The notes beneath the pieces were generated by a model. That model was not told the DNA's origin. It did no database searches and saw only the letters and a list, made by a program, of their open reading frames with translations. Below are positions 13,829 to 59,680 of a stretch of DNA of 64,000 nucleotides, piece by piece (position 1 is the first letter of the stretch; each line of letters starts with the position of its first letter). This DNA is from Hyalangium minutum (GTDB lineage Bacteria > Myxococcota > Myxococcia > Myxococcales > Myxococcaceae), in contig NZ_JMCB01000001.1 of assembly GCF_000737315.1 (NCBI RefSeq), forward strand, positions 1 through 64,000, read 5' to 3'. The position numbers and the translations under genes were made by a program.

Positions 13829-13858
13829 GTCTCGTGGATCGAGCGCTCACCCCGCTCG

Positions 13859-35803: not shown

Positions 35804-36571
35804 TCAGCGCCGCTTGCGCTCCTGCTCCTCCTCGACCTGCTCCAGGAGATACTGGGCGCGCTGGACCAGGGGACTGCCAGCGGTTCCGGCATCCAGCACC
35901 GTGTGCAGATCCTCCACCGCCAGCAGGAGGTCGCCGCGCCACATGCGGGCCTCGCCCCTGCACACCCGGGCCATGAGGTCCATGGCGTCCAGAGAGAGCG
36001 CCTCCTCGAAGAAGACGAGGGCCTTGTCCGTGGAGCCCTGCGCCATATAGGTGGCGCCCAGCTGGGTGAACACGGGACCGGTGGCCACGCCCATCGTCAC
36101 CAGCCGCTCCAGGATGAGCTGGGCCTCCTCGAGCTGGTCCTCGGTGATGAGGCGGCGCGCTGTGGCCAGGCGCTCGGCGACGGAGCCTTGGGCAGGCTGT
36201 GCCCCCGCGGGCGTCTTCTCCCGGGCCCCCGAGCCCTTCCGAGGCGAGCGGGCCGAAGCCCTCCTCCCAAAGGACGCTTCTTCGGCCTTCTCGGAGACGG
36301 CGGCCCGGCTCTTGGGCCGGGGCCCGAGCGGCGAGCTCTGCGCGGGCTGCGCGGCGGCGCCCCCCAACCGGGGCTCGATGGGAATCTCGGGCAGCGTGGG
36401 GTGCTCCGCCATCGACGCTCTGGGAATCTCGGGCACCGTGGGGTGCTCGGCCATGGACACTTCGCTCGGGCGCTGGGCAGGGGTCCCCCCGCGCACGGAG
36501 CGCTTCTCGAAGTGGTGGATCTTCACGGGGGCAGGGGGTGATTTCCTGCCCGACCCCTGAGAGTTGGCCAT
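35804..36571 (-). CDS. TPR protein with disordered N-terminus (T3SS chaperone-like)
   Basis: C-terminal TPRs (VFTQLGATY, ARVCRGEARM). Confidence 0.7.
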   Translation of the reverse strand: MANSQGSGRKSPPAPVKIHHFEKRSVRGGTPAQRPSEVSMAEHPTVPEIPRASMAEHPTLPEIPIEPRLGGAAAQPAQSSPLGPRPKSRAAVSEKAEEASFGRRASARSPRKGSGAREKTPAGAQPAQGSVAERLATARRLITEDQLEEAQLILERLVTMGVATGPVFTQLGATYMAQGSTDKALVFFEEALSLDAMDLMARVCRGEARMWRGDLLLAVEDLHTVLDAGTAGSPLVQRAQYLLEQVEEEQERKRR

Positions 36572-36607: not shown

Positions 36608-37075
36608 CTACTTCTTCAATTCCGCGGGCGCGCTGCGCTGGGCGGCTTCGATGGTCTCGATGGCCGCGGCGGCCAGCAGGCGCGCTCGCATGGTGAGCGG
36701 ATCCTTGTTCTCCGGATCCAGATCGACCGCTCGGGCAAAGTCCTGAGCGGCCTCCATGATGTTGCCCAGGCGCAGGTGCACCTCGCCCCGGTTGACCAGC
36801 GCCGCCGAGTCCTTCGGGTTGAGCTTCAGCGCCTCGTCAAAGGCCTCCAAGGCCGCATCCAGCTCGTCCTCGGCCAGATAGATGGCGCCCAGGGCGGTCC
36901 GGTAATAGGCCTCCAGGGGGTCCTGCTGCGCCAGCTCCTCGAAAATGAGCCGAGCCTCTGGATAGTCGCCCTCCTCATAGAGGCGGAAGCCCTCCATGGC
37001 CCGCTCGAGCAACTCGGGGGAGGACAACGTATTCGCCTCCTCGTTTGCGACCATCGCCTTGGATTCCGTCGTCAT
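36608..37075 (-). CDS. SycD/LcrH-like TPR chaperone
   Basis: 155 aa; YRTALGAIYL, ALVNRGEVHL; three TPRs. Confidence 0.75.
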   Translation of the reverse strand: MTTESKAMVANEEANTLSSPELLERAMEGFRLYEEGDYPEARLIFEELAQQDPLEAYYRTALGAIYLAEDELDAALEAFDEALKLNPKDSAALVNRGEVHLRLGNIMEAAQDFARAVDLDPENKDPLTMRARLLAAAAIETIEAAQRSAPAELKK

Positions 37076-37221: not shown

Positions 37222-37277
37222 AAACGAAACCGGCCCCGCGGAAGGACCCTGGCTCCAGGTCCTCGCGAGGCCGGCTC
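37222..37277 (-). terminator. Terminator hairpin of small-gene copy 1
   Basis: Reverse complement gagccggcctcgcgaggacc...ggtccttccgcggggccggtttcgttt. Confidence 0.8.
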
Positions 37278-37311: not shown

Positions 37312-37539
37312 CTACACCGCCAGGTTCTGGATGACGCTCTTGCTCATCTCGTGCAGCGCCTTCATCATCGTCGTCGCCAGCTGCACCATCTCCTGCATCC
37401 GCTGCATCTCGGACTGAACCTTCAGAAGGTTCTTCTGCTCCGCGGGGATGTTCTGGTTGTCGATCCACGAGTTCATCGTGCCGACGTTGCTGTTGATGGT
37501 GCCAGAGAAGTTGTTGAAAACGCCACCGAGGCTGGACAT
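37312..37539 (-). CDS. 75-aa needle/filament-subunit-like protein, copy 1 (isolated)
   Basis: MSSLGGVFNNFSG...EQKNLLKVQSEMQ...TTMMKALHEMSKSVIQNLAV; RBS aaggag. Confidence 0.85.
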   Translation of the reverse strand: MSSLGGVFNNFSGTINSNVGTMNSWIDNQNIPAEQKNLLKVQSEMQRMQEMVQLATTMMKALHEMSKSVIQNLAV

Positions 37540-37599
37540 GACGAACTCCTTGAGACGGACGGGGTAGGGAGGGTGAACCGCGAAGCAGCTTACACCTGG

Positions 37600-37650
37600 A
37601 TTATCGGTTCTGGGCAGAGGGAGTTTCCTGGAATTTTCCGGATCATTTCC
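37600..37650 (-). promoter_or_regulatory. sigma28-type promoter GAAA-N15-ACCGATAA with upstream GGAAA repeats
   Basis: Sense strand ggaaatgatccggaaaattccaggaaactccctctgcccagaaccgataat. Confidence 0.75.
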
Positions 37651-37739
37651 AGGCATTGAAGCGTCCCCTCCCCTGCCTGGCCTACCCCCTGCCACTCATG
37701 AACTGCCGCAGGGCCCTACCTGAACTAGGATGGGGGGAC

Positions 37740-38351
37740 ATGGACCTCTCCCAGGCGAAGGACATCTTCCAGCGGCTCTACCAGGACCTGTCGGGTTACG
37801 AGACGGCCCAGCGGGAGAAGGAGCGGTTGGGACGGGGGGATCAGTCCACCACCTATGGAGAGATCCTCCCCGAGAGCTTCGTGGAGCTGATGGCTGCGGC
37901 CTCCCCCACCGAGGGTGACGTGTTCATTGATCTGGGCTCCGGCACGGGCAAGGCGACCTTCATGGCGGCCCTCAGCTTTCCGCTCAGCAAGTCCATGGGG
38001 GTGGAGCTGCTCCCTGGGCTGGGGGATCTGGCGCGCGAGCGGCTGGCCGTCTACGACTCCGAGTTCCGTCCCCACCTGCCCGAGCAGCACCAGCGCCAGC
38101 GCATCGAGTTCATCGACGGAGACCTGACGGAGCAGGATCTCTCGGGCGTGGACATCGTCTTCGCGCACGCCACCTGCTTCCCGCCGGAGCTGATCGCCCA
38201 GCTGGGCAAGAAGCTCGAGGAACTCAAGCCGGGGGCCCGGGTCATTGTCGCGGGGAACACGCTCAACACGCCGGCCCTCAAGTTCCTCGCCATGAAGATC
38301 ATGAGGGCGGATTGGGGCACGGCCCTCACCGCGATATACCAGCGCACTTGA
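37740..38351 (+). CDS. DOT1-like class I SAM-dependent methyltransferase
   Basis: TYGE, FIDLGSGTGK, AAL...GVEL, DIVFAHATCF, LKPGARVI, DWG...IY: the DOT1 motif order. Confidence 0.75.
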   Translation: MDLSQAKDIFQRLYQDLSGYETAQREKERLGRGDQSTTYGEILPESFVELMAAASPTEGDVFIDLGSGTGKATFMAALSFPLSKSMGVELLPGLGDLARERLAVYDSEFRPHLPEQHQRQRIEFIDGDLTEQDLSGVDIVFAHATCFPPELIAQLGKKLEELKPGARVIVAGNTLNTPALKFLAMKIMRADWGTALTAIYQRT

Positions 38352-38395
38352 CCTCAACCCACCGCCACACCGAGTGGCCACCCAGGAGAGAGCCC

Positions 38396-38968
38396 ATGCG
38401 AAGCGCTTCCCTGTCCCGTCTGCTGACCGCCGCCTGTACGGTGGCGATGCTCGGCGCCTGCAACGGTAACTCTGGAGGTACGGGAGGTCCGGGAGGCGAC
38501 GGGAATCCCAACACCAACACGCCCAAGTCGCCCCCGCCCCAGGCGCTCCAGGGCCAGTGGCTCAACGGCACCATCTCTCCTCTGTGGTTCTGGGATGAGA
38601 ACTCGCAGATGGTGCAGAACGGCGGCGGCACGGCCGCGTACTTCGTCTTCAAGCCCGACGGCAGCTACGAGGAGTTCCTCTATGCCAGCTTCACCAGCGG
38701 CGGCTCCTGCCGCTACCTGAGCTGGAGCTCCACGGAGGGCACGGCCACCTTCGAGGACGGCACCTTCCACATCTACCCGACCAAGGGGCGCTCGAAGTAC
38801 TCGGACTGCACCCACGGCAGCGACTTCGACAAGTCGCTCAGCGCGGATGAGCTGAAGAAGGCCCAGAAAGTCTACTACTGGAAGTTCCAGGCGCAGGCGG
38901 ACGGCACGTCGCAGCTGATGATGGGGCCCAACGAGACGAGCCTGAGCGTCTTCCAGAAGGCGCCGTAG
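38396..38968 (+). CDS. Hypothetical lipoprotein (beta-rich, lipocalin-like)
   Basis: Lipobox MLGAC; LQGQW; RBS aggag. Confidence 0.75.
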   Translation: MRSASLSRLLTAACTVAMLGACNGNSGGTGGPGGDGNPNTNTPKSPPPQALQGQWLNGTISPLWFWDENSQMVQNGGGTAAYFVFKPDGSYEEFLYASFTSGGSCRYLSWSSTEGTATFEDGTFHIYPTKGRSKYSDCTHGSDFDKSLSADELKKAQKVYYWKFQAQADGTSQLMMGPNETSLSVFQKAP

Positions 38969-39018
38969 CCGCGGTGCTCCAGGGTTGAGCACCGCGGCCA
39001 CATGCGCGCGGTGCTCCC

Positions 39019-39522
39019 CTACTCCTCGAGGGCCTCGTCGGCCTTCTTCTGCAGCATGGCCAGGGTGGCGCGGGCGCGCTTGGTGGTGTCGCGCTTGGCC
39101 TCCGGGTCCAGCTTCAGGGCAGCGAGGATGTCCTTGAGGGCATCCTCGAGCTTGCCCTCTTGCAGGTACAGCTCGCTGCGGCCCACCAGCGCATCCACGT
39201 TGGCGATGTTGAGCCGCAGGGAGGTGGTGTACTCCTCCAAGGCCTCGGGGAGCTGCTTGAGCTGGTGGTACGCGAACGCCAGATTCACGTGGAAGACGCT
39301 GTCATAGGGCGAGGCGGCCACCAGCCCCAGGAAGATGTCGCGCGCCTTCTCCAGATCGCCCCGCTTGAGCATGTTGTTGCCCATGGTCGCGATCTCATAC
39401 AGCTGCTTCTGCGAGAGCCCCAGGTACTGCGCGGGGGTGATGTCTCCGGCGACGAGCATCTCGCCGAGCTCCTCCTTGCTGGGAGCCTTGGCGCTGCCGG
39501 GCTTCTGCGGCGTGTCACTCAT
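39019..39522 (-). CDS. SycD/LcrH-like TPR chaperone
   Basis: LGLSQKQLYEIATMG, FHVNLAFAY, ALVGRSELYL. Confidence 0.8.
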   Translation of the reverse strand: MSDTPQKPGSAKAPSKEELGEMLVAGDITPAQYLGLSQKQLYEIATMGNNMLKRGDLEKARDIFLGLVAASPYDSVFHVNLAFAYHQLKQLPEALEEYTTSLRLNIANVDALVGRSELYLQEGKLEDALKDILAALKLDPEAKRDTTKRARATLAMLQKKADEALEE

Positions 39523-39610
39523 GGTTCACCTGGACAAAAAGGCGGGAGGAAGGCGCAGTGGGTTGCGCTCTCCTCCCGCCCGGGAATGAGATGGATTCAG
39601 CCTAGCTCAA

Positions 39611-40720
39611 TTACGCCGTGAAGGTGTTGCGGAACGGCTGCACGGCCTTGCTGAGGTGATCCAGGCCGCGGAACAGGTGCAGCATGCGGCCGATGGAGTC
39701 GAAGTCCTTGCCGAGGCGCTCCTGGCGGCGGTTCAGCCAGCTGCCGGGCCCGGGGCGCGCGGTCAGGCCGCCGTCCTGCTCGTGGCGGCGCGACAGCTGC
39801 TCGGCCAGCTTGGACAGGCCCTTGAACACATCCGACAGGCCCTTGAACACGTCGCGCATCTGCTTCAGCAGCGCGTCGGCGCCCTGCTGCGCGCCCGACG
39901 GCTGGGTGGTCGGGGTGCCCGGAGCCAGATCCTTGCCCAGCTTGAAGGACTCGCCGCCGTTGTTGCTGCCGACGATCTCCTTGCCCGTGAAGGACCAGTC
40001 ATCGGTCTCCTTGCCCATCACGAACACGTCCTTGCCACCGAAGTCGTTGACGTGCTGGAAGCCGTCGTGGGTGACCTGGCCGGTCTTGCCCTTGCCCTTG
40101 TCGATGTCCGTCACCTGCACGCGGTCGTTGCCGGAGATGATGTCCAGGCCGCCGGTCACCGTCATGCCGTTGCCGTAGGGCTTGGTGGTGACGTTGATAC
40201 GGGTGCCGTCGCCCAGCACGAAGGTGCTGTCCTTCTTGAAGTCCCACTTGCCGCCGTCGCCCTCGGCCACGTGCGGGTCGCCCCAGATCTTCGTCTCCTT
40301 GCCGTCCGGACCGGAGATCTTCCAGTCGAACTGGCCGAGCTGCTCGATCTTGTAGCCGCCGGGGGTGGTCACCACGCCGTTGGAGCTCGTCTGCAGGCTG
40401 CCCTGGGGGTGCGAGCCCTGCGAGGGGTTCGGGGTCTCAGGACCCACCGCCATCTTCCACAGGTCGTCCAGCGAGCGGGGGCCCGTGGAGGACGGAGGAA
40501 CGAAGCCGGTGTTGCCGCCGGCCGCAGTGCCCGGCGAGGTGGCGCCGGGGGGAACGAAGCCGGTGTTGCCCGTGGCCGCGGTGCTCGGGGCCTGCGCGGA
40601 GGCGGCCTTGATCAGCTGCGCCTCGAGCTTGTTGAGCTTGCCCTCGAGGGTGCTCAGCTGGGAGCTGAGGGTGTTGAGAGGATTGGCTCCGATACCCACA
40701 GGCTTCGACGTGATCGACAT
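39611..40720 (-). CDS. DUF1521-like domain protein (T3SS-associated)
   Basis: TKIWGDPHV...WDFKKDSTFVLGDGTRINVTTKP core; low-complexity N-terminus; helical C-terminus. Confidence 0.75.
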   Translation of the reverse strand: MSITSKPVGIGANPLNTLSSQLSTLEGKLNKLEAQLIKAASAQAPSTAATGNTGFVPPGATSPGTAAGGNTGFVPPSSTGPRSLDDLWKMAVGPETPNPSQGSHPQGSLQTSSNGVVTTPGGYKIEQLGQFDWKISGPDGKETKIWGDPHVAEGDGGKWDFKKDSTFVLGDGTRINVTTKPYGNGMTVTGGLDIISGNDRVQVTDIDKGKGKTGQVTHDGFQHVNDFGGKDVFVMGKETDDWSFTGKEIVGSNNGGESFKLGKDLAPGTPTTQPSGAQQGADALLKQMRDVFKGLSDVFKGLSKLAEQLSRRHEQDGGLTARPGPGSWLNRRQERLGKDFDSIGRMLHLFRGLDHLSKAVQPFRNTFTA

Positions 40721-40803
40721 GATTACTATCCTTTTTGGTTAAAGCGCCGCGGCCGCCCCTCCGAGAGGGAGAAGCGCTGCCGCCCAGCGCATTTCTTACT
40801 ATG

Positions 40804-40858
40804 AGTATCGGCCCATCCGCTTCAGAGTTTCGTGGCGATTTTCACCAACATTATCGGT
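40804..40858 (-). promoter_or_regulatory. sigma28-type promoter GAAA-N15-GCCGATAC upstream of the DUF1521 gene
   Basis: Sense strand gaaactctgaagcggatgggccgatact; an additional ACCGATAAT further upstream. Confidence 0.65.
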
Positions 40859-41026
40859 CGCTTGACCGATGCACTGCCAGCTCCACCCGAGCGCAGATAG
40901 GCACACAAAGTCGCACCCGAGCGGTCGGATCGCGCGCTCGAAGCCCAAAACGAAACCGGCCCCGCGGAAGGACCTGAGGTCCTCGCGAGGCCGGCTCCGA
41001 ACTGCTCTGTAGCGCCTACCCGGCTA

Positions 41027-41254
41027 TCACACCGCCAGGTTCTGGATGACGCTCTTGCTCATCTCGTGCAGCGCCTTCATCATCGTCGTCGCCAGCTGCA
41101 CCATCTCCTGCATCCGCTGCATCTCAGCCTGAACCTTCAGAAGGTTCTTCTGCTCCGCGGGGATGTTCTGGTTGTCGATCCACGAGTTCATCGTGCCGAC
41201 GTTGCTGTTGATGGTGCCAGAGAAGTTGTTGAAAACGCCGCCGAGGCTGGACAT
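41027..41254 (-). CDS. 75-aa needle-subunit-like protein, copy 2 (QAE allele)
   Basis: Identical to copy 1 except one S-to-A change; RBS aaggag. Confidence 0.85.
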   Translation of the reverse strand: MSSLGGVFNNFSGTINSNVGTMNSWIDNQNIPAEQKNLLKVQAEMQRMQEMVQLATTMMKALHEMSKSVIQNLAV

Positions 41255-41314
41255 GTGCGACTCCTTGAGACGGATGGGGTAGGAAGGGTGAACCGCGAAG
41301 CAGCTTACACCTGG

Positions 41315-41365
41315 ATTATCGGTTCTGGGCAGAGGGAGTTTCCTGGAATTTTCCGGATCATTTCC
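41315..41365 (-). promoter_or_regulatory. sigma28-type promoter of copy 2
   Basis: GAAA-N15-ACCGATAA, same as the copy 1 promoter. Confidence 0.75.
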
Positions 41366-41516
41366 TACCTCCCGGATCCCCTCGAGTCGCCTGAGCCTCT
41401 GAGCCCAGTTCGGCGCCCGCGGGCTCCTGCGGCGCCAAAACGAAACCGGCCCCGCGGAAGGACCTGAGGTCCTCGCGAGGCCGGCTCCGAGCTGCTCTGT
41501 AGCGCCTACCCGGCTA

Positions 41517-41744
41517 TCACACCGCCAGGTTCTGGATGACGCTCTTGCTCATCTCGTGCAGCGCCTTCATCATCGTCGTCGCCAGCTGCACCATCTCCTG
41601 CATCCGCTGCATCTCGGACTGAACCTTCAGAAGGTTCTTCTGCTCCGCGGGGATGTTCTGGTTGTCGATCCACGAGTTCATCGTGCCGACGTTGCTGTTG
41701 ATGGTGCCAGAGAAGTTGTTGAAAACGCCGCCGAGGCTGGACAT
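41517..41744 (-). CDS. 75-aa needle-subunit-like protein, copy 3
   Basis: Same protein as copy 1; RBS caggag. Confidence 0.85.
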   Translation of the reverse strand: MSSLGGVFNNFSGTINSNVGTMNSWIDNQNIPAEQKNLLKVQSEMQRMQEMVQLATTMMKALHEMSKSVIQNLAV

Positions 41745-41805
41745 GTGTGACTCCTGAGAGTGGGAAATTCGTTTGGGGAAGGGAAAGTAACTGCCTGACA
41801 AGCTG

Positions 41806-41857
41806 ATTATCGGGCCAGCCCTGCCGGAGTTTCCTGCGACTTTTCCGGATCATTTCC
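41806..41857 (-). promoter_or_regulatory. sigma28-type promoter of copy 3
   Basis: GAAA-ctccggcagggctgg-CCCGATAA. Confidence 0.75.
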
Positions 41858-42006
41858 TACCTCCCGGATCCCCGAGTCGCCTGAGCCTCTGAGCCCAGCT
41901 CAGCTCCCGGGGGCTCCCCAGGCCCCAAAACGAAACCGGCCCCGCGGAAGGACCTGAGGTCCTCGCGAGGCCGGCTCCGAACTGCTCTGTAGCGCCTACC
42001 CGGCTA

Positions 42007-42234
42007 TCACACCGCCAGGTTCTGGATGACGCTCTTGCTCATCTCGTGCAGCGCCTTCATCATCGTCGTCGCCAGCTGCACCATCTCCTGCATCCGCTGC
42101 ATCTCAGCCTGAACCTTCAGAAGGTTCTTCTGCTCCGCGGGGATGTTCTGGTTGTCGATCCACGAGTTCATCGTGCCGACGTTGCTGTTGATGGTGCCAG
42201 AGAAGTTGTTGAAAACACCGCCGAGGCTGGACAT
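42007..42234 (-). CDS. 75-aa needle-subunit-like protein, copy 4 (QAE allele)
   Basis: Same protein as copy 2. Confidence 0.85.
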   Translation of the reverse strand: MSSLGGVFNNFSGTINSNVGTMNSWIDNQNIPAEQKNLLKVQAEMQRMQEMVQLATTMMKALHEMSKSVIQNLAV

Positions 42235-42296
42235 GTGCGACTCCTTGAGAAAGCAGGGTGGGTGGGAGCGGCCGACAGCAGCCGCCTGACAAAATG

Positions 42297-42347
42297 ATTC
42301 TCGTGCCCACTCAGGAAAAGTTTCCTGGGGACTTTCTGGATCATTTT
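42297..42347 (-). promoter_or_regulatory. Degenerate sigma28-type promoter of copy 4
   Basis: GAAA-N15-CACGAGAA. Confidence 0.55.
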
Positions 42348-42461
42348 TCTGAGCCCAGCCGCCTGGAGTTTCCGGCTCCCGCAACAAAACCGGCCTCGCG
42401 GAAGGACCTGAGGTCCTCGCGAGGCCGGCTCCGCACTCCCCTGAAGCGACTGCCGGAGGAA

Positions 42462-42692
42462 TTACACCGACAGGTTCTGGATGGTGCTCTTGCTCATCTC
42501 GTGCAGCGCCTTCATCAGCGTGGTGGCCAGCTGGGTCATCTCCTGCATCCGCTGCATCTCGGACTGAACCTTCAGCAGGTTCTTCTGCTCCGCCGGGATG
42601 TTCTGGTTGTCAATCCACGAGTTCATCGTGTTGACGTTGCTGTTGATGGTGCCCTGGAACTGGTTGAAGACGCCCTGCAGTGCCTGCGACAT
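42462..42692 (-). CDS. 76-aa divergent needle-subunit-like paralog, copy 5
   Basis: MSQALQGVFNQFQGTINSNVNT...MSKSTIQNLSV. Confidence 0.85.
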   Translation of the reverse strand: MSQALQGVFNQFQGTINSNVNTMNSWIDNQNIPAEQKNLLKVQSEMQRMQEMTQLATTLMKALHEMSKSTIQNLSV

Positions 42693-42751
42693 GATTGACT
42701 CCGTATATGAGTGATCCGCCAGTCAGTGGCGGCTATGACTTCCTTGCCCTG

Positions 42752-42802
42752 ATTATCGGAGTCACCACCCCCGAGTTGCTTGGGGATTTTCGGAATCATT
42801 TC
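42752..42802 (-). promoter_or_regulatory. sigma28-type promoter of copy 5
   Basis: GCAA-N15-TCCGATAA. Confidence 0.7.
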
Positions 42803-42939
42803 GCCGCCAGTGCGAGCTCCGGAGCCGGTGGCGCGGAGGCCTGGAGGCCCTCGAGGCCCAAAACGAAACCGGCCCCGCGGAAGGACCTGAGGTCCTCGCG
42901 AGGCCGGCTCCGAACTGCTCTGTAGCGCCTACCCGGCTA

Positions 42940-43167
42940 TCACACCGCCAGGTTCTGGATGACGCTCTTGCTCATCTCGTGCAGCGCCTTCATCATCGTC
43001 GTCGCCAGCTGCACCATCTCCTGCATCCGCTGCATCTCGGACTGAACCTTCAGAAGGTTCTTCTGCTCCGCAGGGATGTTCTGGTTGTCGATCCACGAGT
43101 TCATCGTGCCGACGTTGCTGTTGATGGTGCCAGAGAAGTTGTTGAAAACGCCGCCGAGGCTGGACAT
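42940..43167 (-). CDS. 75-aa needle-subunit-like protein, copy 6
   Basis: Same protein as copies 1 and 3. Confidence 0.85.
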   Translation of the reverse strand: MSSLGGVFNNFSGTINSNVGTMNSWIDNQNIPAEQKNLLKVQSEMQRMQEMVQLATTMMKALHEMSKSVIQNLAV

Positions 43168-43229
43168 GTGTGACTCCTGAGAGTGGGAAATTCGTTTGGG
43201 GGAAGCGAAAGTAACCGCCTGACAGCCTG

Positions 43230-43281
43230 ATTATCGGACCCACACCGCCGGAGTTTCCTCCGGTTTTCCAGGATCATTTCC
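43230..43281 (-). promoter_or_regulatory. sigma28-type promoter of copy 6
   Basis: GAAA-N15-TCCGATAA. Confidence 0.75.
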
Positions 43282-44078: not shown

Positions 44079-44555
44079 TCAGCGGCGACCCGTGAGCGAG
44101 GAAATCATCGCATTGGCCTTCCGAGTCACCGGGTCATCCTCCGCAGCCAGCGAGGCGGCGCGGCGCAGATCCTCGATGGCCTGCGACTTCTGGCCCATGG
44201 TGAGCTTCACCTCGGCGCGGCCCACGTAGGCCTGGGCATCGTCCGAGGCCAGCTTGATGGCCACGTCATAGGCGGCCAGCGCGCCCTGGGCGTTGCCCGC
44301 GGCCAGCTCCACCACCCCGAGCGCCTTGGCGAAGTACGGATCCGTGGGGTTCACCGCGTAGAGCCCCTGGAAGAGCGTCCGCGCCTCGTTCACCCGGCCC
44401 TGGTGGAAGAAGAAGTAGGCCGTCTTGGCGATGGCGTAGAGCTCATCGTCTGAGTAGCCGCGCACGTCGCGCAGGGTCGCCTTGCCGTCCGCCCACTTCT
44501 GCAGGGCCGCGACGAGCTTCGCCTCTTCCTGGGGGCTGTTGGGGTCCGCAGCCAT
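44079..44555 (-). CDS. SycD/LcrH family class II chaperone
   Basis: GYSDDELYAIAKTAYFFF..G, YFAKALGVVE, AYVGRAEV. Confidence 0.85.
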   Translation of the reverse strand: MAADPNSPQEEAKLVAALQKWADGKATLRDVRGYSDDELYAIAKTAYFFFHQGRVNEARTLFQGLYAVNPTDPYFAKALGVVELAAGNAQGALAAYDVAIKLASDDAQAYVGRAEVKLTMGQKSQAIEDLRRAASLAAEDDPVTRKANAMISSLTGRR

Positions 44556-45398: not shown

Positions 45399-46460
45399 CT
45401 AGGCGCGGGCCGGGGAGCCCTCTTTCAGGCCGTAGACGAAGTTCAGCACCTCGGCCACCGCGTCATACAGCTCCTCGGGGATGTCCTGGCCCACGTCCAC
45501 CCGGAGCAGCGCGTGCGCCAACGGCACGTTGCGCAGCAGGGGCACGTCGGCGGCCTTGGCCAGCGCCTTGATCTGCTCGGCCTTGGAGTCCAGGCCCTTG
45601 GCGAGCACCCGGGGCGCGCCGTCCTTCTCCCGGTCGTACTTGAGCGCCACGGCGACGTGGTCCGGGTTGGTGACGATCACGTCGGCGCCCTTCACGGACT
45701 CCATCTGAGCGCTCTCCATGATCTCCTGGTGCATCTGCTTGCGGTGCGCCTTGTGGTGCGGATCGCCCTCGCTCTCCTTGTATTCCTTCTTCACCTCGTC
45801 CTTCGACATCATCATGTCCTTCATGTAGGACTTTCGCTGCCACCAGATGTCGAAGATGGAGAAGAGCAGGAAGATGAGGCCGATCTTGAAGGCGACGCGG
45901 TAGACCATCTCCCCCATCACCCCCATGATCCCCGGCACGTCCATGCGCACCGTCTGGACCACCATGCCCATGCCGTCGCGGATGACGCCGAAGATGACGT
46001 AGCCCGCGACGCTGATCTTGGCCAGGTTCTTGATCAGCTCCACGGCCGTCTTCTTGGAGAACATGTTCTTGAGGCCCTGGATGGGATTCAGCTTCTCCAG
46101 CTTGGGCATCAAGGGGTCCAGGGTGAAGAGCGAGCCCACCTGGAGGAACTCGGCCAGCCCGGCCACCACCGCGCAGGCGCCGATGACGGGTGCCACCAGC
46201 GTGAGCACCGCGCTCAAGCCCATCTCCATCAGATGGAAGGTGGCGATCTGCAGCGAGTCCGGCTTCGACATCTGATCGAACGAGTAGCGGAAGAGGATCG
46301 TCACCTTCTCTTCGATGTTGCCCCAGGTGGCCTTGACGGCGCCCAGCCCCACGAGCAGCACGAACACGCCCGTCAGGTCCTTGCTCTTCCAGACCTGGCC
46401 CTTCTTGCGTGAGTCCTGCAGCTTCTTTTGTGTGGGTTCTTCTGTCTTCTCGTCGGACAT
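45399..46460 (-). CDS. sctU: T3SS export/switch protein SctU (FlhB family)
   Basis: [38 protein letters not shown]. Confidence 0.95.
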   Translation of the reverse strand: MSDEKTEEPTQKKLQDSRKKGQVWKSKDLTGVFVLLVGLGAVKATWGNIEEKVTILFRYSFDQMSKPDSLQIATFHLMEMGLSAVLTLVAPVIGACAVVAGLAEFLQVGSLFTLDPLMPKLEKLNPIQGLKNMFSKKTAVELIKNLAKISVAGYVIFGVIRDGMGMVVQTVRMDVPGIMGVMGEMVYRVAFKIGLIFLLFSIFDIWWQRKSYMKDMMMSKDEVKKEYKESEGDPHHKAHRKQMHQEIMESAQMESVKGADVIVTNPDHVAVALKYDREKDGAPRVLAKGLDSKAEQIKALAKAADVPLLRNVPLAHALLRVDVGQDIPEELYDAVAEVLNFVYGLKEGSPARA

Positions 46461-49143: not shown

Positions 49144-50463
49144 TCACCCGGCCAGGGAGAGGACCCGGACACCCAGCTGGCCCTCGACTTCGACCAGCTC
49201 GCCCCGAGCCACCACCTTGCCATTGACGGACAGCTCCACTGGCTCGCCGGGCGAGCGGTGAAGCTCGATGACTTGTCCCACCTTCAACGCCACCACCTCG
49301 TCGGCGGTAACGGGAACCCGGGCCAGTTCCACGGCGAGCTGCAGCGGGATGTCAGCCAGCAAGTCGCCTCCCTCCGGCCTGTTCGCGTCGTCCATATTCC
49401 CTTCCGACTCCGGAGGCATCTCATTCTCCGGGTTGGTGAAAACCTCGTTGTCGTTGGCGGGGGGCAGGACGCGCTGGAAGTTCGGCTCGCCCAGGATGAA
49501 GTCCTTGACGCGCGCCTTGTACTGGCCGTCCTCGACGAAGACCTCTGCCTCCACTCGGGTGCCGCCCAGCCCCACGCGCAGCGTGGCCGTGCCTGCCTCA
49601 CCCCGGTCCGGACGGGTCGAGAGCGAGTCCAGCAGCACCACGTCCTTCACGCGGATGTACTCCAGATCGGAGCTGGCGATCTCCGCCTGGCCGATCTCCG
49701 CGCGCAGCCACGTGCGCACCGTGGACAGCAGCTTCCGGTTCATCCGGATGTCCGCGCGCAGGCGGCTGCGCTTCTCCGCGCCGCCACGCCCCTCTTCGGT
49801 GGCATTGAGCACCGCCGGAGGCATCACCACGCGCACGATGCCCGCGTGGGGCCCCACCGAGGCGTTCATCTGCACGACGACCACCAGCTCGTCATCCCCA
49901 AGCTTGGCGGCCACCTCGTCCACGCCCCGGGCGACGGACTCCAGCCGCATGCGCGGAAACGAAGCCTCCAGCGCGGGCGCCACGGCCTTGATGCCCTCGA
50001 GGACCACGAAGCTCATCACGCCTTCTTCGATGTCCGTCAGCGGCCGCAGGCCCACTGTCTCGCCCGCGCCACCCAGCAGCATGTCCACCAGGTTGTGGGC
50101 GAACGATAGCTCCACCTCCATCACCACCCGGCTCTTGAGCGCTCCGGGCGCGAGCACCGTCAGGAAGGAGGGCTCGCCCAGGTGGCGGCGCAGCTCCGCG
50201 ATGGGGCGGATCTGCATGCTCACGAGGGAGACGCGGGCCTCGGCGTCGAACAGCGCCTTGAGCCGGGCATAGAGGGGCTCAGCCGCGGTGGGAGACGGAA
50301 TGGCCCGGTGGAGGCGAGCCGTCAGCTCCGTCTGGGCGCGGTCCACGCGCTCCAGGTTGCGGAACTTGAACGGCTTCCAGGGCTTGGAGGGCTTTATCTG
50401 GCGGAGGTCCACCAGCATCGTTCGCTCGTGGATTCCGGGTTCATCATCCCGGCCAAGGCTCAT
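49144..50463 (-). CDS. sctQ: T3SS sorting-platform protein SctQ (FliM/FliN-like)
   Basis: C-terminal SpoA domain DIPLQLAVEL...GELVEVEGQLGVRV. Confidence 0.9.
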   Translation of the reverse strand: MSLGRDDEPGIHERTMLVDLRQIKPSKPWKPFKFRNLERVDRAQTELTARLHRAIPSPTAAEPLYARLKALFDAEARVSLVSMQIRPIAELRRHLGEPSFLTVLAPGALKSRVVMEVELSFAHNLVDMLLGGAGETVGLRPLTDIEEGVMSFVVLEGIKAVAPALEASFPRMRLESVARGVDEVAAKLGDDELVVVVQMNASVGPHAGIVRVVMPPAVLNATEEGRGGAEKRSRLRADIRMNRKLLSTVRTWLRAEIGQAEIASSDLEYIRVKDVVLLDSLSTRPDRGEAGTATLRVGLGGTRVEAEVFVEDGQYKARVKDFILGEPNFQRVLPPANDNEVFTNPENEMPPESEGNMDDANRPEGGDLLADIPLQLAVELARVPVTADEVVALKVGQVIELHRSPGEPVELSVNGKVVARGELVEVEGQLGVRVLSLAG

Positions 50464-51455
50464 GCCCGGGCCTCGAAGCGCAGATCTTCAAGCTTGAGGC
50501 CCCGGCCCTGCAGCGCACTCTTGAGGCCTTCGCTCTGCTCCTCGATCATCTTGAGCACGTCCCGATCGCTGCCGCTGAAGACGGCGGAGATCTTCCCGTT
50601 CTTCGCGCTGAGCTTGATGGACAAGCCGCTGAGGACGTTGCTGCGCAGGTCGATCTGGAACTCGGCCGCGCCCGCGCCGTTGGTGCCCACGCGGACCTTC
50701 TCGACGATCTTCTGGGCAATCTCGTTGGCGATGGCGCGCAGCCGGTCCGAGCCCGTGGTGGGCTTGGGCTTGGCCACCGGCACCGGAGCCATCAGCGCTG
50801 GGTTGAAGCGGAAGCCCGCCGCGGCCGCCGCATCCCCACCCTGCTTGCCGTCCTTGTTCCCACCGCCCTGCCCGCCGCCGGAGTCCGCGTCCGTCTTCAG
50901 AGCGCCCTTCTGGCCCGCGCGGCCGGCGCTGCGCAGATCCGAGGCCTGATCGTCCGCCTTGGCATCGCCCTCGGACCTCGCCTCGGAGGAGCGCGACTCG
51001 TGGAGAGACTCCGAGGACTCACGGCCGTGCTTGCGGTCCACCGCCATGGCCTGGCCCTGGGCGGTGTCGGAGGAGTGGCTCTCGGACATCTTCTCGGCCT
51101 CACCCGAGAGAGAGGACTCGACGCGCTCGTTGAGGGCCTTGGCGTCCTGGCGGCCCTGGGTCTTGCCCGTCTCCTGGCGCTGGCCGGTCTGCCGGGCGGC
51201 AGTGCCCTCCTGCTGGCTCGTCTCGGAGCCCTTGGCTTCCTTGGTGAGGCGCGCGAGCACCTGCGACCCCAGGCCCTGCTTCGTCTCCTGCTTCTGCTGG
51301 GTCTGGGCCTGCTGCGTCTGCGAGCTCTGAACCAGCTTGGAGAAGGCGTTCTCGCCCTGCCGGATCTGCTTGCTCTTGGCCTCGGCGCGCTGCTTCTCCT
51401 GCAGCAGGCGCTGGGTAATCTGGTCTGCCTGGCGATCGTCTTCGACTCGGCTCAT
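50460..51455 (-). CDS. sctP: SctP/FliK-like length-control (ruler) protein
   Basis: Long Q/S/G-rich disordered region plus a C-terminal T3S4-like domain; canonical position between sctO and sctQ. Confidence 0.7.
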   Translation of the reverse strand: MSRVEDDRQADQITQRLLQEKQRAEAKSKQIRQGENAFSKLVQSSQTQQAQTQQKQETKQGLGSQVLARLTKEAKGSETSQQEGTAARQTGQRQETGKTQGRQDAKALNERVESSLSGEAEKMSESHSSDTAQGQAMAVDRKHGRESSESLHESRSSEARSEGDAKADDQASDLRSAGRAGQKGALKTDADSGGGQGGGNKDGKQGGDAAAAAGFRFNPALMAPVPVAKPKPTTGSDRLRAIANEIAQKIVEKVRVGTNGAGAAEFQIDLRSNVLSGLSIKLSAKNGKISAVFSGSDRDVLKMIEEQSEGLKSALQGRGLKLEDLRFEARA

Positions 51456-56772: not shown

Positions 56773-57324
56773 TTACACCTGGGTCTTGACCACGTCCTTG
56801 AGGCCGCTGGTGGCCTTCTCGACGACCTTCGACGTGAGGTCCAGCTCCTGGGTGTACTTGTACATGGAGGCCTGGAGCGAGAGCAGCTCCGAGTTGGAGA
56901 AGTTCTTCCCGCTCATGCCGGAGTTGATGAGCTTCTCCAGGTTCATCTGGCCCTTCTCCAGCGAGGAGACGACGCTGGAGACCATGGTGTTGGCCTTGCT
57001 CGTCTGCGCCTTCGCGTCCACCGGCTCCGCGGCCTTGGCGGTCAGCTGCTGGCTGTTGGCGCCGTTGACCTTGTTGAGGCCTGCCTTCTCCGTCTTGTTG
57101 ACGTCGTCGACCTTACGCGACGCGTCGACCTGCTGGGCCTTCTGCGTCTGCTGGACCGACTGCGCCTGCTGCACGCCCTGGGCCTGGTCAACGCCCTGAG
57201 ACTTGTTAGCGAGAACCCCGTCGAACTTCGAGGCTCCCTGCTTGTTCACCTGCTGCGCGCCCTGATCCTGCAGCTTCTGCTGCGCGATCTGTGCGGCCGA
57301 GATGCCTGCTGTCGGACCCGCCAT
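56773..57324 (-). CDS. sctI: SctI-like inner rod protein
   Basis: C-terminus ELLSLQASMYKYTQELDLTSKVVEKATSGLKDVVKTQV matches the YscI/HrpB2 pattern; lies upstream of sctJ. Confidence 0.7.
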   Translation of the reverse strand: MAGPTAGISAAQIAQQKLQDQGAQQVNKQGASKFDGVLANKSQGVDQAQGVQQAQSVQQTQKAQQVDASRKVDDVNKTEKAGLNKVNGANSQQLTAKAAEPVDAKAQTSKANTMVSSVVSSLEKGQMNLEKLINSGMSGKNFSNSELLSLQASMYKYTQELDLTSKVVEKATSGLKDVVKTQV

Positions 57325-58039
57325 GTGACTGCCTCCTTGCATCGTCGGAGGAAGCCGGGGCTTCCTCGTCGTCTAAAAGTTCCTTGAGCCGCTCGATGGC
57401 CCGCGCATGAAGCCGCGACGCCCAGCTCTTCGACTGCCCAATCTCCGCGCCCGCCTCTTCCAGCGTCTTCCCGTGGAAGTAGTACCCCTGCAGCAGCTGC
57501 CGCTCCTTCTCCGGGAGCTGATCGATCGCCGCCCTCACCCGCCGCTTCAGCTGCTCCATCTCCAGCCGCTGATCCGCCGGCAGAGACTCATCCACGTACC
57601 CCGACGCGTCCAGCCCTTCCAGGCTGGTGGCCAGCACCATGGCCAGCCCCGTCACCGCGTTGGAGATGTCATTCACATCATCGTCAAATGACCCTCCGCG
57701 GTTGCCTCCGCCCTGCTCGCGGTCCGACAAATTTCCAAGGTAAGCGGCCGCCCGTTCACCCACGAACGCGCCGCGCGCATCCGCGCCCTTCAACACCCCC
57801 ATTTTCCTCAGGCCGTCGAAAATGGCGCCCTTGATGCGGTAGTGGGCAAAGGTGAGGAAATTGGCTCCCACCTTGGGATCAAAGCGATCTGCCGCCTCGA
57901 GCAGACCGATCTGCCCGTAGGCCATCAACTCCTCGATCTCGAGCTGGGCGTTGAACTGCTTGCGGACAGTCGCTGCCAGCGACCGCACGTAAGGGCCGTA
58001 TTTCTCGAGGATCGCCTTCTTGTCGTCGCCGAAGCCCAA
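57206..58039 (-). CDS. FliA/WhiG-like (sigma28-type) RNA polymerase sigma factor
   Basis: Region 2 EELMAYGQIGLLEAADRFDP...YRIKGAIFDGLR; region 4 LPEKERQLLQGYY...TLEEAG...SRLHARA. TTG start inferred; 3' end overlaps the sctI start. Confidence 0.85.
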   Translation of the reverse strand: MGFGDDKKAILEKYGPYVRSLAATVRKQFNAQLEIEELMAYGQIGLLEAADRFDPKVGANFLTFAHYRIKGAIFDGLRKMGVLKGADARGAFVGERAAAYLGNLSDREQGGGNRGGSFDDDVNDISNAVTGLAMVLATSLEGLDASGYVDESLPADQRLEMEQLKRRVRAAIDQLPEKERQLLQGYYFHGKTLEEAGAEIGQSKSWASRLHARAIERLKELLDDEEAPASSDDARRQSHGGSDSRHLGRTDRAAEAAGSGRAAGEQAGSLEVRRGSR

Positions 58040-58046
58040 ACGCCGC

Positions 58047-58448
58047 TCACTCGGCCTTCGACCACAGCCGCTCAAGAACCTGGTTGAGCCGGGGATCCTC
58101 TTGGAGCGCGTCCGCGATCTTGCTGGAGAGCGCGGAGGACTTCATCCGGAGCTTCTCCTTGAGGACCTCAGCGACGAGGTGCTTCGTGGCCTCCTCCTTG
58201 TTCTTGAAGCCGCCGTTCTTGAGCTGCTTGGCGATGGCCATGGCCTGGGAGGAGATGGGATCCGCCGCCCGGGCCTGCTCGACATTGGAAGAGCCCACCA
58301 GCCCGGAGGGCCCCACCAGGGACTCGGCCTTGTCGACCTTGCCCCCGAAACTCGAACCACCCGCGGGAGCCTTGCCGGACGCACCCCTCGCGCCACCCGC
58401 ACGGCCCTTACCACCCCCGCGTCCTACGCCACCGACTGACATCGCCAA
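58047..58448 (-). CDS. Hypothetical protein, possible FlgM-like anti-sigma
   Basis: Gly-rich N-terminus; AIAKQLKNGGFK segment; immediately upstream of the sigma gene. Confidence 0.6.
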   Translation of the reverse strand: MAMSVGGVGRGGGKGRAGGARGASGKAPAGGSSFGGKVDKAESLVGPSGLVGSSNVEQARAADPISSQAMAIAKQLKNGGFKNKEEATKHLVAEVLKEKLRMKSSALSSKIADALQEDPRLNQVLERLWSKAE

Positions 58449-58910: not shown

Positions 58911-59008
58911 GAAGCGTGCTCTCCTGTGCAAGGGCCCGGAAGGAAGAAGGGGGGCAGTACCGCAGCCCCCCTTCCCACTCGGCGCCCGACCACCAACAGC
59001 TTAGCGGA

Positions 59009-59584
59009 TTAGCGGATGTTGCCGATCGCGTTCTTCGCCGTCTCGTGGCGGGACTTCAGCACGTTGGAGACGGCCTGGTACTTCTGGGACTCCTGCTGCA
59101 TGGCGGACTGGAGCTTCAGCAGGTTCTTCTGCTCCTGGAACATGCCGGCCAGCTCACCGTTGAACTCGGAGCCCGGCGTGCCCGTGTTGCCCGCCAGGTA
59201 GTTCGGGCCGCCCGCGGTGCCGCCGCCGCCCACGCCCGGGATGCCGACGCTGCCGCCGGAGCCCACGGTGGTGTTCACGGAGGGAACGCCCACCGAGCCC
59301 GCGCCCGTGCTGCCCGAGCCCGCGCCCGGCAGAACCGACGTGTACGGAGTGGACGCGCCGCCAGTGGCGCCCGACGCGGTAAGCGTCGTCATCGACGAGA
59401 CCGCCGCCGAGACGATGCCGCCACCGGAGAACATCCCCGTGGCCAGACCCACGCCGCCGGCGACCGCGCCCGCCGCGTTGTTCACGCCCGCCTGAACGCG
59501 AGCACCGAAGCTCGTGTCCGGGGTCTGCCGACCCACCGACAGGTTGGTAGACATCCGAGGACCCATCAATCCATCGACCTTCAT
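59009..59584 (-). CDS. 191-aa Gly-rich protein with needle-subunit-like C-terminus
   Basis: EQKNLLKLQSAMQQESQKYQAVSNVLKSRHETAKNAIGNIR aligns without gaps to the 75-aa proteins. Confidence 0.8.
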   Translation of the reverse strand: MKVDGLMGPRMSTNLSVGRQTPDTSFGARVQAGVNNAAGAVAGGVGLATGMFSGGGIVSAAVSSMTTLTASGATGGASTPYTSVLPGAGSGSTGAGSVGVPSVNTTVGSGGSVGIPGVGGGGTAGGPNYLAGNTGTPGSEFNGELAGMFQEQKNLLKLQSAMQQESQKYQAVSNVLKSRHETAKNAIGNIR

Positions 59585-59652: not shown

Positions 59653-59680
59653 ATTATCGCTGATCACGCGCCTGGGTTGC
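59653..59680 (-). promoter_or_regulatory. sigma28-type promoter GCAA-N15-AGCGATAA
   Basis: Sense strand gcaacccaggcgcgtgatcagcgataat, about 70 bp before the ATG at 59584. Confidence 0.6.

Follow-up and report, generated by a model that had tools for sequence, protein, structure and literature searches.

A multicopy candidate needle-subunit gene family with sigma-28-type promoters in the secretin-less type III secretion cluster of Hyalangium minutum and other myxobacteria

The Myxococcus-type type III secretion system (T3SS), employed by myxobacteria in killing prey, has been described in the literature as needle-less, lacking a needle subunit, as the original prediction for this locus had stated, and models have been built on the absent needle, namely loss of SctF in a basal lineage and Tad-pilus tips as a stand-in (PMC3459982, PMC10433427, PMC12075869). 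The window analysed here, a stretch of 64,000 nucleotides from contig JMCB01000001.1 of Hyalangium minutum DSM 14724, carries a T3SS cluster with genes for SctD, V, U, T, S, R, Q, P, O, N, L and J, for an SctI-like protein and for LcrH-like TPR chaperone candidates. With SctU as the orthology anchor, comparison with the T3SS* of M. xanthus DK1622 gave identities of 70% for SctU and about 88% for SctV, and the same gene order. Judged by these sequences, the cluster is an ortholog of the M. xanthus T3SS* (mxan_2434-2464). No secretin domain or other outer-membrane channel was found in any ORF scanned in the cluster or elsewhere in the window, so that a classical needle would be without an evident exit: the secretin (SctC) ring through which SctF passes has no counterpart within the window. 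Orthology (SctU, gene order) and the lack of a secretin in the window thus agree with the predicted home of the genes in a secretin-less T3SS homologous to that of Myxococcus. Hook, rod, L/P-ring and Mot genes were not recognised among the cluster genes, nor was a tip or a recognisable translocon in the host system. The export gate SctRSTUV is encoded in the same cluster as the SctI-like and SctP/FliK-like proteins, which is the context of an sctF gene. The relevant neighbours are:

36608..37075, minus strand: LcrH/SycD-like TPR chaperone candidate, directly downstream of copy 1 (see below)
39019-39522, 44079-44555 and 58476-58931: other TPR chaperone candidates
39611..40720, minus strand: DUF1521 protein of 369 aa (NopE-like, has WGDPHV)
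45399..46460, minus strand: SctU export switch, motif NPDH
50460..51455, minus strand: SctP/FliK-like protein (length-control, substrate-switch family)
56773..57342, minus strand: SctI-like inner-rod candidate, start codon uncertain, overlapping the sigma factor gene at its end
57206..58075, minus strand: FliA/WhiG-like sigma factor gene, whose annotated 277-aa product starts near 58039
59009..59584, minus strand: long paralog of the small proteins, 191 aa, with a Gly-rich N-terminal part and a needle-like C-terminal helix ending in ...KNAIGNIR

Six minus-strand ORFs of 75-76 aa lie in the window; five form a tandem array and one stands at a distance of 3.7 kb:

37312..37539, minus strand: SctF-like copy 1, 75 aa, S43; solitary (slot B), flanked by the TPR167/DOT1 genes and TPR155
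41027..41254, minus strand: SctF-like copy 2, 75 aa, A43; array unit 1 (slot A)
41517..41744, minus strand: SctF-like copy 3, 75 aa, S43
42007..42234, minus strand: SctF-like copy 4, 75 aa, A43
42462..42692, minus strand: SctF-like copy 5 (divergent), 76 aa, 87% identical
42940..43167, minus strand: SctF-like copy 6, 75 aa, S43

The ORFs bear out the predicted set of six genes, five of them identical except at one S/A site: among the five 75-aa copies the sole difference is at residue 43 (the copies at 37312, 41517 and 42940 have S, those at 41027 and 42007 have A), and copy 5 differs from copy 1 by 8 synonymous and 10 non-synonymous codons. Start-to-start distances are, in order, 3715, 490, 490, 455 and 478 bp, and Tandem Repeats Finder delimits an array at 40944-43183 (period 490, 4.7 copies), in keeping with the predicted spacing of 455-490 bp. 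Each of the six copies also has, as predicted, its own ribosome-binding site (GGAG, 7-8 nt 5' of the ATG). The NCBI annotation already contains the six genes, none with a Pfam family on record, and labels of hypothetical protein are what their orthologs bear in other genomes. The long paralog at 59009..59584 is a seventh member, overlooked by the original prediction.

For H. minutum there is a draft genome, and another draft, that of A. violaceum Cb vi76, has its cassettes collapsed into contigs of 573 bp, so the array could be suspected of being an assembly artefact, or the ORFs of not being genes. Against this, units that are 97.4-99.6% identical in their coding part share only 65-85% identity in the upstream 150 nt, so that the spacers are distinct for each unit, and the same arrays are present in independent genomes, among them other species with complete chromosomes; for these two reasons the array is considered genuine, as the original prediction had held. 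The coding nature of the ORFs is further indicated by an in-frame GC3 of 0.91-0.95 together with the GGAG site of each copy, by a dN/dS well below 1 between close species (0-0.27), and by conservation of the protein across genera. The probability left to an artefact is negligible.

M. xanthus DK1622 has, at the same two slots, a pair of identical homologs of 74 aa, which its annotation calls hypothetical; they had been overlooked in the original prediction. Scored with a profile built without them, they reach 37.4 bits (E=1e-7), whereas the M. xanthus protein searched alone against Pfam gave no match, being too divergent, unlike that of H. minutum. The gene order shared with the M. xanthus T3SS* extends to the DUF1521 and TPR genes and to both small-gene slots; the copies number 5+1 in H. 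minutum, on the strand of the sct genes, and 1+1 in DK1622, on the opposite strand. A count across other Myxococcales, proposed earlier as a check, gave at least two copies in every complete cluster examined and up to 6-7. The multicopy state is therefore a trait of the family and not a peculiarity of Hyalangium. The copies of one genome are identical or almost identical; those of different genera have diverged.

Several comparisons relate these small proteins to needle subunits. Indeed (i) Pfam PF09392 (T3SS_needle_F) matches the H. minutum protein at E=5e-6 over nearly the whole model (residues 7-72 on positions 4-70 of 71), the same model is matched at E<0.01 by 7 of 15 family members, and relatives carry precomputed PF09392 matches in the database; (ii) the family profile matches the PDB entry 7y6c_F at E=1.1e-7, an entry taken to be a needle-protein fragment because its nearest PDB relatives are BsaL, YscF, MxiH and PscF; (iii) the family profile aligns end to end with MxiH (positions 2-73 against 14-85, E=0.036), with identical or conservative MxiH residues opposite the turn proline and the family's conserved Q, K, E/D, I and N; (iv) the size lies within the range of SctF (about 70-90 aa) and AlphaFold2 predicts a helical hairpin (helix 2-27, loop 28-32, helix 33-74; pLDDT 92), whose loop NQNIP lies where the Pro-containing turn between two helices had been expected. 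The claim of an SctF-like subunit therefore stands as far as the full-length PF09392, needle-fragment and MxiH matches are concerned, but not at the level of the family thresholds: the PF09392 score of 27.1 bits is under the curated cut-off of 29.4, and NCBIfam TIGR02105 (SctF) gives 17.7 bits for a cut-off of 41.7.

The proteins resemble the SctF subunits PrgI, MxiH, YscF and SsaG in their size (72-76 aa), in the helix-turn-helix hairpin with a turn proline, in a C-terminal helix ending in ...VIQN/VIRN/VIGKI, which aligns without gaps to ...IIQNFR of MxiH, in a variable N-terminal half, in the lack of a Sec signal, and in lying in a T3SS cluster near TPR chaperone-like, SctI-like and SctP-like genes. 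The C-terminal helix is the part used for polymerisation in SctF; in the myxobacterial family it can be aligned to solved needle proteins, and the C-terminal part is 55% identical, as against 30% for the N-terminal part. They differ from SctF by scores under the family cut-offs, by a single turn proline (IPAEQ, APAEM) where PrgI and MxiH have P-x-x-P, by their 2-7 identical autonomous cassettes where sctF is one gene inside an operon, by promoters of the sigma-28 type, and by a host system without secretin, tip or recognisable translocon.

Small two-helix hairpins could also be cytoplasmic proteins that are never exported, such as a YscE-type (co-)chaperone or another regulator. A Foldseek search with the hairpin model, proposed earlier as a check, gave no match at E<=0.001 and is uninformative, because a two-helix hairpin is generic and cannot be separated from other hairpins. 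TPR proteins with matches to LcrH/SycD adjoin the small genes, as in YscE-YscF-YscG trios; that at 44079-44555 passes the TIGR02552 cut-off and that at 58476-58931, beside the long paralog, has a weak CdsG match (E=1.8e-4). YscE-like proteins were not recognised. But the Pfam and PDB matches are to the needle subunit and not to the YscE family, and 2-7 identical copies, each with a strong promoter and terminator, would be unexpected for a chaperone. The N-terminal composition is, moreover, typical of exported substrates: in 9 of 9 orthologs the first 20 residues are devoid of D and E, and the N-terminus is rich in S, T, N, G, A and Q. A cytoplasmic role is thus very unlikely, and an SctF-like subunit remains the preferred reading.

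Each small gene is preceded by conserved promoter elements. An upstream box GAAATGATCCGGAAAA is kept in all six copies (0.13 expected by chance), and GAAACT-N15-CGATAAT, with at most one mismatch, is present in 6/6 copies, a scan of the window giving 8 sites against 0.12 expected. Searches for a sigma-70-type promoter at the cassettes found none, so the cassette promoters are of another type. The cassettes of 8/8 genomes compared, across genera, carry AAAC-N14-(G/C/A)CCGATAA, with variant -10 boxes in H. minutum copy 4 and in both M. xanthus copies. The -10 consensus and spacing are those of sigma-28 promoters (PMC12784957), with a GCCGATAA-type -10 and an AAAG-type -35 14 nt upstream. Downstream, a near-identical terminator hairpin (-43 kcal/mol, z=-6.6) is shared among the copies; in copy 5 the hairpin is the same and the U-tract weaker. 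The elements are:

37600..37649, minus strand: promoter region of copy 1, box GAAATGATCCGGAAAA followed by GAAACTCC-N11-ACCGATAAT, sigma-28-like
41315-41342, 41806-41833, 42297-42324, 42752-42779 and 43230-43257: promoter core sites of the other five copies
41349-41364, 41841-41856, 42332-42347, 42787-42802 and 43265-43280: upstream boxes of the other five copies
40945..41005, minus strand: terminator hairpin and U-tract 3' of copy 2, -43.1 kcal/mol
37232-37248, 41448-41464, 41938-41954 and 42871-42887: equivalent terminator hairpin cores

On these motifs, the copies form separate cassettes, each bounded by a promoter of the sigma-28 type and a strong terminator. The prediction of a promoter and a near-identical terminator for each copy is thereby upheld, as is that of amplification as complete transcription units; the sigma-28 type of the promoters and the FliA-like sigma factor gene in the cluster had been missed. 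The DUF1521 gene has a promoter of the same type at 40804-40831, its product is likely a co-regulated T3SS substrate, and a natural protein, P0022, consists of DUF1521 fused to a needle-like C-terminus. The long paralog is preceded by a weak match to the cassette promoter at 59653-59680.

The sigma factor ORF has FliA_WhiG (E=3e-32) and FliA (E=5e-31) as its best NCBIfam matches, at 112 bits for a cut-off of 189.6, and its orthologs are 76-88% identical across myxobacteria. In flagellar systems, secretion of FlgM reports the assembly state to sigma-28, and the pairing of sigma-28-like promoters with a FliA-like sigma factor recalls this FlgM/FliA logic. The small proteins could accordingly be exported T3SS* substrates that form no filament: abundant effectors of small size, a cap, an adaptor, or a regulator coupled to export in the manner of FlgM. 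An N-terminus resembling a T3S signal, fast divergence between genera, which is common for effectors, and the lack of a secretin for needle passage would all fit, but the full-length likeness is to the structural needle family, with none to FlgM or effector families, and what is conserved is the C-terminal helix, the polymerisation region of SctF. Identical multicopy cassettes, too, suit a bulk structural product more than a regulator, and a separate 133-aa gene adjoining the sigma factor gene occupies the place expected for an anti-sigma factor. Export without a filament is therefore considered unlikely. With reasonable though not high confidence, the six genes are taken to encode a divergent SctF-family helical-hairpin subunit of the secretin-less T3SS*, carried on multicopy cassettes of the sigma-28 type and predicted to form a filament.

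This arrangement resembles that of the flagellin class 3 (FliA/sigma-28) genes, which likewise have a GCCGATAA-type -10 with the same spacing to an AAAG/AAAC -35 and a FliA-like sigma factor whose gene accompanies those of the export apparatus, and which in many bacteria exist as multiple near-identical tandem copies; by analogy, the small-gene product would be a bulk polymer exported late. Unlike flagellin, the small protein has 75 aa and no D1-D3 domains, and its match to Flagellin_C (PF00700) is weak (E=0.007, 17.1 bits for a cut-off of 23). To our knowledge, myxobacteria have no flagellum. EspA and HrpA are likewise T3SS-exported polymer subunits, made in bulk and fast-evolving, but EspA has about 192 aa, HrpA is unrelated in sequence and the short myxobacterial proteins are needle-sized; one family member gave a weak match to EspA (E=0.0033), and the 191-aa long paralog is the closer EspA analogue in length.

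From its gene content, the T3SS* probably builds a filament that has so far been missed. The FliA/WhiG-like sigma factor of the cluster would transcribe each cassette from its sigma-28-type promoter, as a late, high-output class under flagellin-like control, with transcript starts predicted just 3' of CCGATAAT, and the DUF1521 protein would be co-transcribed from the same promoter type. The acid-free, Ser/Thr/Asn/Gly-rich N-terminus would direct export of the subunit through the SctRSTUV gate, and the exported subunit would polymerise via its conserved C-terminal helix on an SctI-like base into a conduit resembling a needle or filament. Several cassettes, which gene conversion would keep identical, could raise the supply of subunit; this dosage argument is one of analogy with flagellins, since classical injectisomes manage with a single sctF gene. 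The polymer may be periplasmic, or may cross the outer membrane via the secretin of another system, for example a co-recruited Kil/Tad machine.

In summary, an SctF-like gene that is conserved, multicopy and separately promoted in each complete cluster examined is a concrete candidate for the missing conduit, and a genetically tractable one; the model strain DK1622, with its two copies, is among the carriers. That promoters of the sigma-28 type are paired with the cluster FliA-like sigma factor in a non-flagellated host bears on the evolution of injectisomes from flagella. Tentatively, and with somewhat less confidence than for the subunit itself, the predation T3SS* may not be needle-less but possess an unseen filament of a fast-evolving SctF-like subunit of 72-76 aa, with genes run like those of flagellin, which may act in the periplasm or exit via the Kil/Tad secretin, delivering lytic effectors. 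If so, the T3SS* would be a living intermediate between flagellum and injectisome, and the earliest-branching non-flagellar T3SS lineage would have kept SctF instead of losing it.

The window derives from contig JMCB01000001.1 of GCA_000737315.1 (positions 1-64000), and the JMCB01 accession series corresponds to Hyalangium minutum DSM 14724T (PMC5441343). ORF calling recovered the six small genes, arranged as follows:

Small ORFs of 75-76 aa in the window
Start 37312, minus strand: single copy, 3.7 kb from the array
Starts 41027, 41517, 42007, 42462 and 42940, minus strand: tandem array of five copies (start-to-start 490, 490, 455 and 478 bp)

Number, size and spacing are those of the original prediction, and so is the single variable site: five of the proteins differ solely at residue 43 (S/A), while the sixth (42462) is 87% identical. 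Coding identity among the five copies amounts to 97.4-99.6%, whereas the upstream 150 nt are merely 65-85% identical. The units are thus unlike in their spacers and alike in their coding parts, which speaks against an assembly artefact, already judged improbable on these grounds; such an explanation of the array and its ORFs is excluded for practical purposes. The same contrast suggests that the coding parts have been homogenised, gene conversion being the most likely route. The NCBI annotation already includes all six genes, without any recorded Pfam family, and their orthologs elsewhere are annotated 'hypothetical protein'. An Rfam search of the array matched no RNA family.

The small genes are enclosed in a T3SS cluster that covers approximately 31-60 kb of the window and encodes the following proteins:

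Components of the T3SS cluster
Within cluster: SctD-like FHA protein, SctV, SctU, SctT, SctS, SctR and SctQ
Within cluster: SctP/FliK-like protein, SctO, SctN, SctL and SctJ
Within cluster: an extra FlhB-C-terminal-domain protein and a protein with a FliG_C-like domain
Within cluster: SctI-like protein, DUF1521 protein and five LcrH/SycD-like TPR proteins

A secretin domain is absent from every cluster ORF and from the ORFs scanned elsewhere in the window. Gene order is constant among the clusters compared: SctU, FlhB-C-like protein, the cluster protein p158, TPR, the cluster protein p211, slot A, DUF1521, TPR, (DOT1), slot B, TPR, ..., SctV, where slots A and B are the two positions holding small genes (in H. 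minutum, the array and the single copy, respectively). Several other features of the cluster were recorded:

36379-36458: 42-bp tandem repeat (1.9 copies) in a 255-aa TPR gene, with the repeated peptide MAEHPT(V/L)PEIP
37656-38351, plus strand: DOT1-like methyltransferase gene between the two slots, shared with the clusters of Archangium, Cystobacter, Melittangium and Stigmatella and missing from that place in M. xanthus
45081-45365, minus strand: separate 94-aa FlhB/SctU C-terminal-domain paralog after SctU, present in all clusters examined
45399-46460, minus strand: SctU, in which NPDH replaces the usual NPTH autocleavage motif
54024-55784, minus strand: 586-aa protein in the SctK slot between SctJ and SctL, with a FliG_C match that passes the Pfam cut-off (E=4.9e-6; 27.2 vs 23.3 bits), whereas published accounts describe FliG as absent from Myxo systems

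The needle-subunit identity proposed for the 75-aa protein was supported by several profile comparisons. Indeed, (i) Pfam T3SS_needle_F (PF09392) matches it over the whole length (E=5e-6, residues 7-72 against positions 4-70 of the 71-position model), with a score of 27.1 bits that lies slightly below the gathering score of 29.4, (ii) a family profile of 15 diverse members matches the solved chain 7y6c_F at E=1.1e-7, and (iii) end-to-end alignments were obtained between the same profile and MxiH (E=0.036) or PrgI (E=0.3-0.9), in which the turn proline and the family's conserved Q, K, E/D, I and N are paired with identical or conservative MxiH residues. Despite its co-chaperone label, 7y6c_F is a needle fragment, since its nearest PDB relatives are BsaL, YscF, MxiH and PscF. 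The NCBIfam SctF model gives 17.7 bits, far under its cut-off of 41.7, which explains why annotation pipelines leave these genes unnamed. Searched exhaustively with HMMER, a set of 1.84 billion representative proteins yielded just 41 matches at E<=0.001. About ten of them are 58-87 aa long and match along most or all of the sequence; the remainder are mostly proteins of 146-403 aa that match at their extreme C-terminus. Weak precomputed PF09392 matches are already attached to a few relatives in some databases.

The AlphaFold2 model (pLDDT 92) consists of a helix (2-27), the NQNIP loop and a second helix (33-74), in agreement with the two helices expected around the NQNIPAEQ turn. The Foldseek comparison that had been suggested as a check was uninformative: against the PDB the model gave nothing at E<=0.001, and MxiH came only at rank 11, amid unrelated hairpins from which the search fails to tell this one, so that the fold adds little by itself. 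A cytoplasmic chaperone-like hairpin would be compatible with such a model. The first 20 residues comprise 65-85% S/T/N/G/A/Q and zero acidic residues in 9/9 orthologs. Between genera, the N-terminal part is much less conserved (30% identity) than the C-terminal 44 residues (55%). Such an N-terminal composition and a variable N-terminal part are expected of an exported SctF-type subunit. The N-terminal composition would also suit an exported but non-polymerising product (effector, cap or export-coupled regulator), which is the main rival and is considered unlikely in view of the end-to-end needle alignments; the cytoplasmic hairpin is less likely than this and appears improbable. The description that suits the small protein best is that of a divergent SctF-family branch which had gone unrecognised, and not of a curated-threshold member.

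Two further gene products of the cluster are related to the small genes by sequence or by promoter:

59009-59584, minus strand: long paralog of 191 aa, Gly-rich in its N-terminal part, whose C-terminus (...KNAIGNIR) matches the family profile (E=1.7e-11, local search)
39611-40720, minus strand: DUF1521 protein with a self-cleavage-type motif (WGDPHV); promoter at 40804-40831

The 191-aa gene heads the cluster, with a weaker version of the promoter motif upstream, and long forms similar to its product make up the majority of the distant relatives. Its orthologs likewise stand first in the clusters of M. stipitatus and of a metagenome-assembled genome (L014), and the TPR protein that follows it (58476-58931) shows a weak match to CdsG, a needle co-chaperone. 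The DUF1521 gene, which is also conserved in M. xanthus, has a promoter of the same sigma-28-like type as the needle-like genes. The DUF1521 family includes the T3SS-secreted proteins NopE1 and NopE2 (PMC6506597). In the metagenomic protein P0022, a DUF1521 domain is fused to a needle-like C-terminus, which suggests that the two products could act together; the DUF1521 protein is a candidate secreted tip or effector.

Myxo systems have been described as devoid of secretin, SctF, tip and translocon, with the remark that SctF 'should have been found' if there (Abby and Rocha, PMC3459982), and mxan_2434-2464, the M. xanthus predation system T3SS*, is reported without a needle homolog in a 2023 review (PMC10433427) and likewise in a 2025 paper (PMC12075869). 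Within the literature searched, Myxococcus and SctF are named together only by Abby and Rocha (PMC3459982), and no paper was found stating that T3SS* carries SctF-like genes, though precomputed PF09392 matches exist. The homology of the window's secretin-less cluster to this system, part of the original prediction, was confirmed: its SctU shares 70% identity with that of M. xanthus DK1622, and the gene order of the DK1622 locus is identical. Two identical 74-aa genes occupy, in DK1622, both positions where H. minutum holds small genes:

L018 (DK1622 locus) 13765-13989 and 16157-16381, strand opposite to the sct genes: the two 74-aa copies

One is flanked by the p211 homolog and the DUF1521 gene, the other by two TPR genes. 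Their product is on record as a hypothetical protein (ABF86581.1/ABF91074.1, UniProt Q1D9J3) and, alone, has no Pfam match; a profile from which all Myxococcus and Corallococcus sequences were excluded gives it 37.4 bits (E=1e-7 at a nominal database size of one million sequences), and the upstream DNA bears the same boxes as in Hyalangium. Hyalangium, Archangium, Stigmatella, Melittangium and Corallococcus have their copies on the sct strand and DK1622 has them on the opposite one, so that the cassettes are able to invert as autonomous units. In M. stipitatus, the 153-aa SctI-slot protein (L022 6809-7270) has a precomputed T3SS_needle_F match that is flagged neither weak nor faint (E of 1e-5 or less), so that needle-family similarity is on record for a second Myxococcus-cluster protein.

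The count of copies proposed for other Myxococcales gave two or more per genome in the nine other genomes tabulated, up to 3 + 4.

Copies of the small gene per genome
Hyalangium minutum: 5 + 1
Archangium lansingense: 6, tandem
A. gephyra PVMSAZ: 3 + 4, on two stretches of one contig
A. gephyra SDU49: at least 3
Melittangium boletus: 3
Stigmatella erecta: 2
Corallococcus sp.: 2
Cystobacter fuscus: at least 2
One MAG (L006): 2 + 1
M. xanthus DK1622: 1 + 1

There are also two accessions each for M. hansupus and other Myxococcaceae. A pattern search of genome contigs from the family alignment yielded 511 matches, none of which was confirmed by tblastn; the degenerate DNA pattern used in its place favours Archangiaceae-like sequences and did not pick up Myxococcus, whose copies were located through SctU gene order. 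Copies are identical or nearly so within one genome and strongly divergent between genera. Comparisons of close species give dN/dS values of 0-0.27; the pairs Hyalangium/Archangium and Corallococcus/Myxococcus were left out as saturated or unreliable. In the draft genome of Archangium violaceum Cb vi76 (L010, L013), the copies occur as isolated 573-bp contigs, which are probably collapsed repeats; short-read assemblies are therefore likely to understate copy number.

Each copy forms a cassette with its own promoter, RBS and terminator, as predicted for H. minutum, and this layout is shared across the eight genomes compared. The box GGAAATGATCCnGAAAA stands upstream, followed by about six bases; the promoter core is AGGAAACTCC-N11-(G/C)CCGATAATC (spacing AAAC-N14-nCCGATAA), with variant -10 boxes in H. 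minutum copy 4 and both M. xanthus copies. The ATG lies about 60-70 nt downstream of the -10 box, GGAG precedes the ORF, and the 3' end carries a hairpin of -32 to -46 kcal/mol and then a U-tract. The sigma-28 -10 consensus is GCCGATAA, and the fliC promoter of P. aeruginosa combines TCTAAAG (-36 to -30) with GCCGATAA (-15 to -8), which gives AAAG-N14-GCCGATAA (PMC12784957). In the 64-kb window the motif occurs at eight sites only (the six cassettes, the DUF1521 gene and the 191-aa gene), with 0.12 expected by chance, and a sigma-70 promoter scan found none. The cluster also encodes a sigma factor:

57206-58075, minus strand: FliA/WhiG-like sigma factor gene between the SctI-like gene and a 133-aa gene, masked by the SctI-like ORF, which overlaps it in another frame

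Among NCBIfam models it scores best against FliA_WhiG (E=3e-32) and FliA (E=5e-31), both times under the cut-off; orthologs are 76-88% identical across myxobacteria, and the M. stipitatus gene has the same cluster position. Myxobacteria are devoid of flagella. An ECF/HrpL 'hrp box' reading of GGAAAC-N-CCGAT was dropped, since the -10 element reads GCCGATAA at the sigma-28 distance and the cluster sigma factor is closest to FliA/WhiG. The 133-aa gene directly upstream of the sigma factor gene (58047-58448, minus strand) has a C-terminal part (…AIAKQLKNGGFKNKEEATKHLVAEVL…) that recalls the anti-sigma-28 factor FlgM by eye; FlgM identity is not claimed, as Pfam and NCBIfam give no support.

The homology signals, the hairpin model, T3SS* orthology, multicopy conservation, the promoter motif and the sigma factor gene were shown by the analysis. 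The small proteins are, with moderate confidence, regarded as SctF-family subunits of T3SS*: the cluster's FliA-like sigma factor would transcribe their genes as a late, high-output class, the products would be exported through the SctRSTUV gate and assemble on the SctI-like base into a putative needle- or filament-like conduit, and several homogenised cassettes could raise subunit supply. The main weaknesses of this predicted mechanism are the sub-threshold family scores and the lack of a cluster-encoded outer-membrane channel. What is new is the presence of an SctF-like protein within a system repeatedly described as lacking SctF, its encoding by 2-7 autonomous, identical cassettes, and the coupling, in non-flagellated bacteria, of a sigma-28-type promoter and a cluster-encoded FliA-like sigma factor to SctF-like genes.
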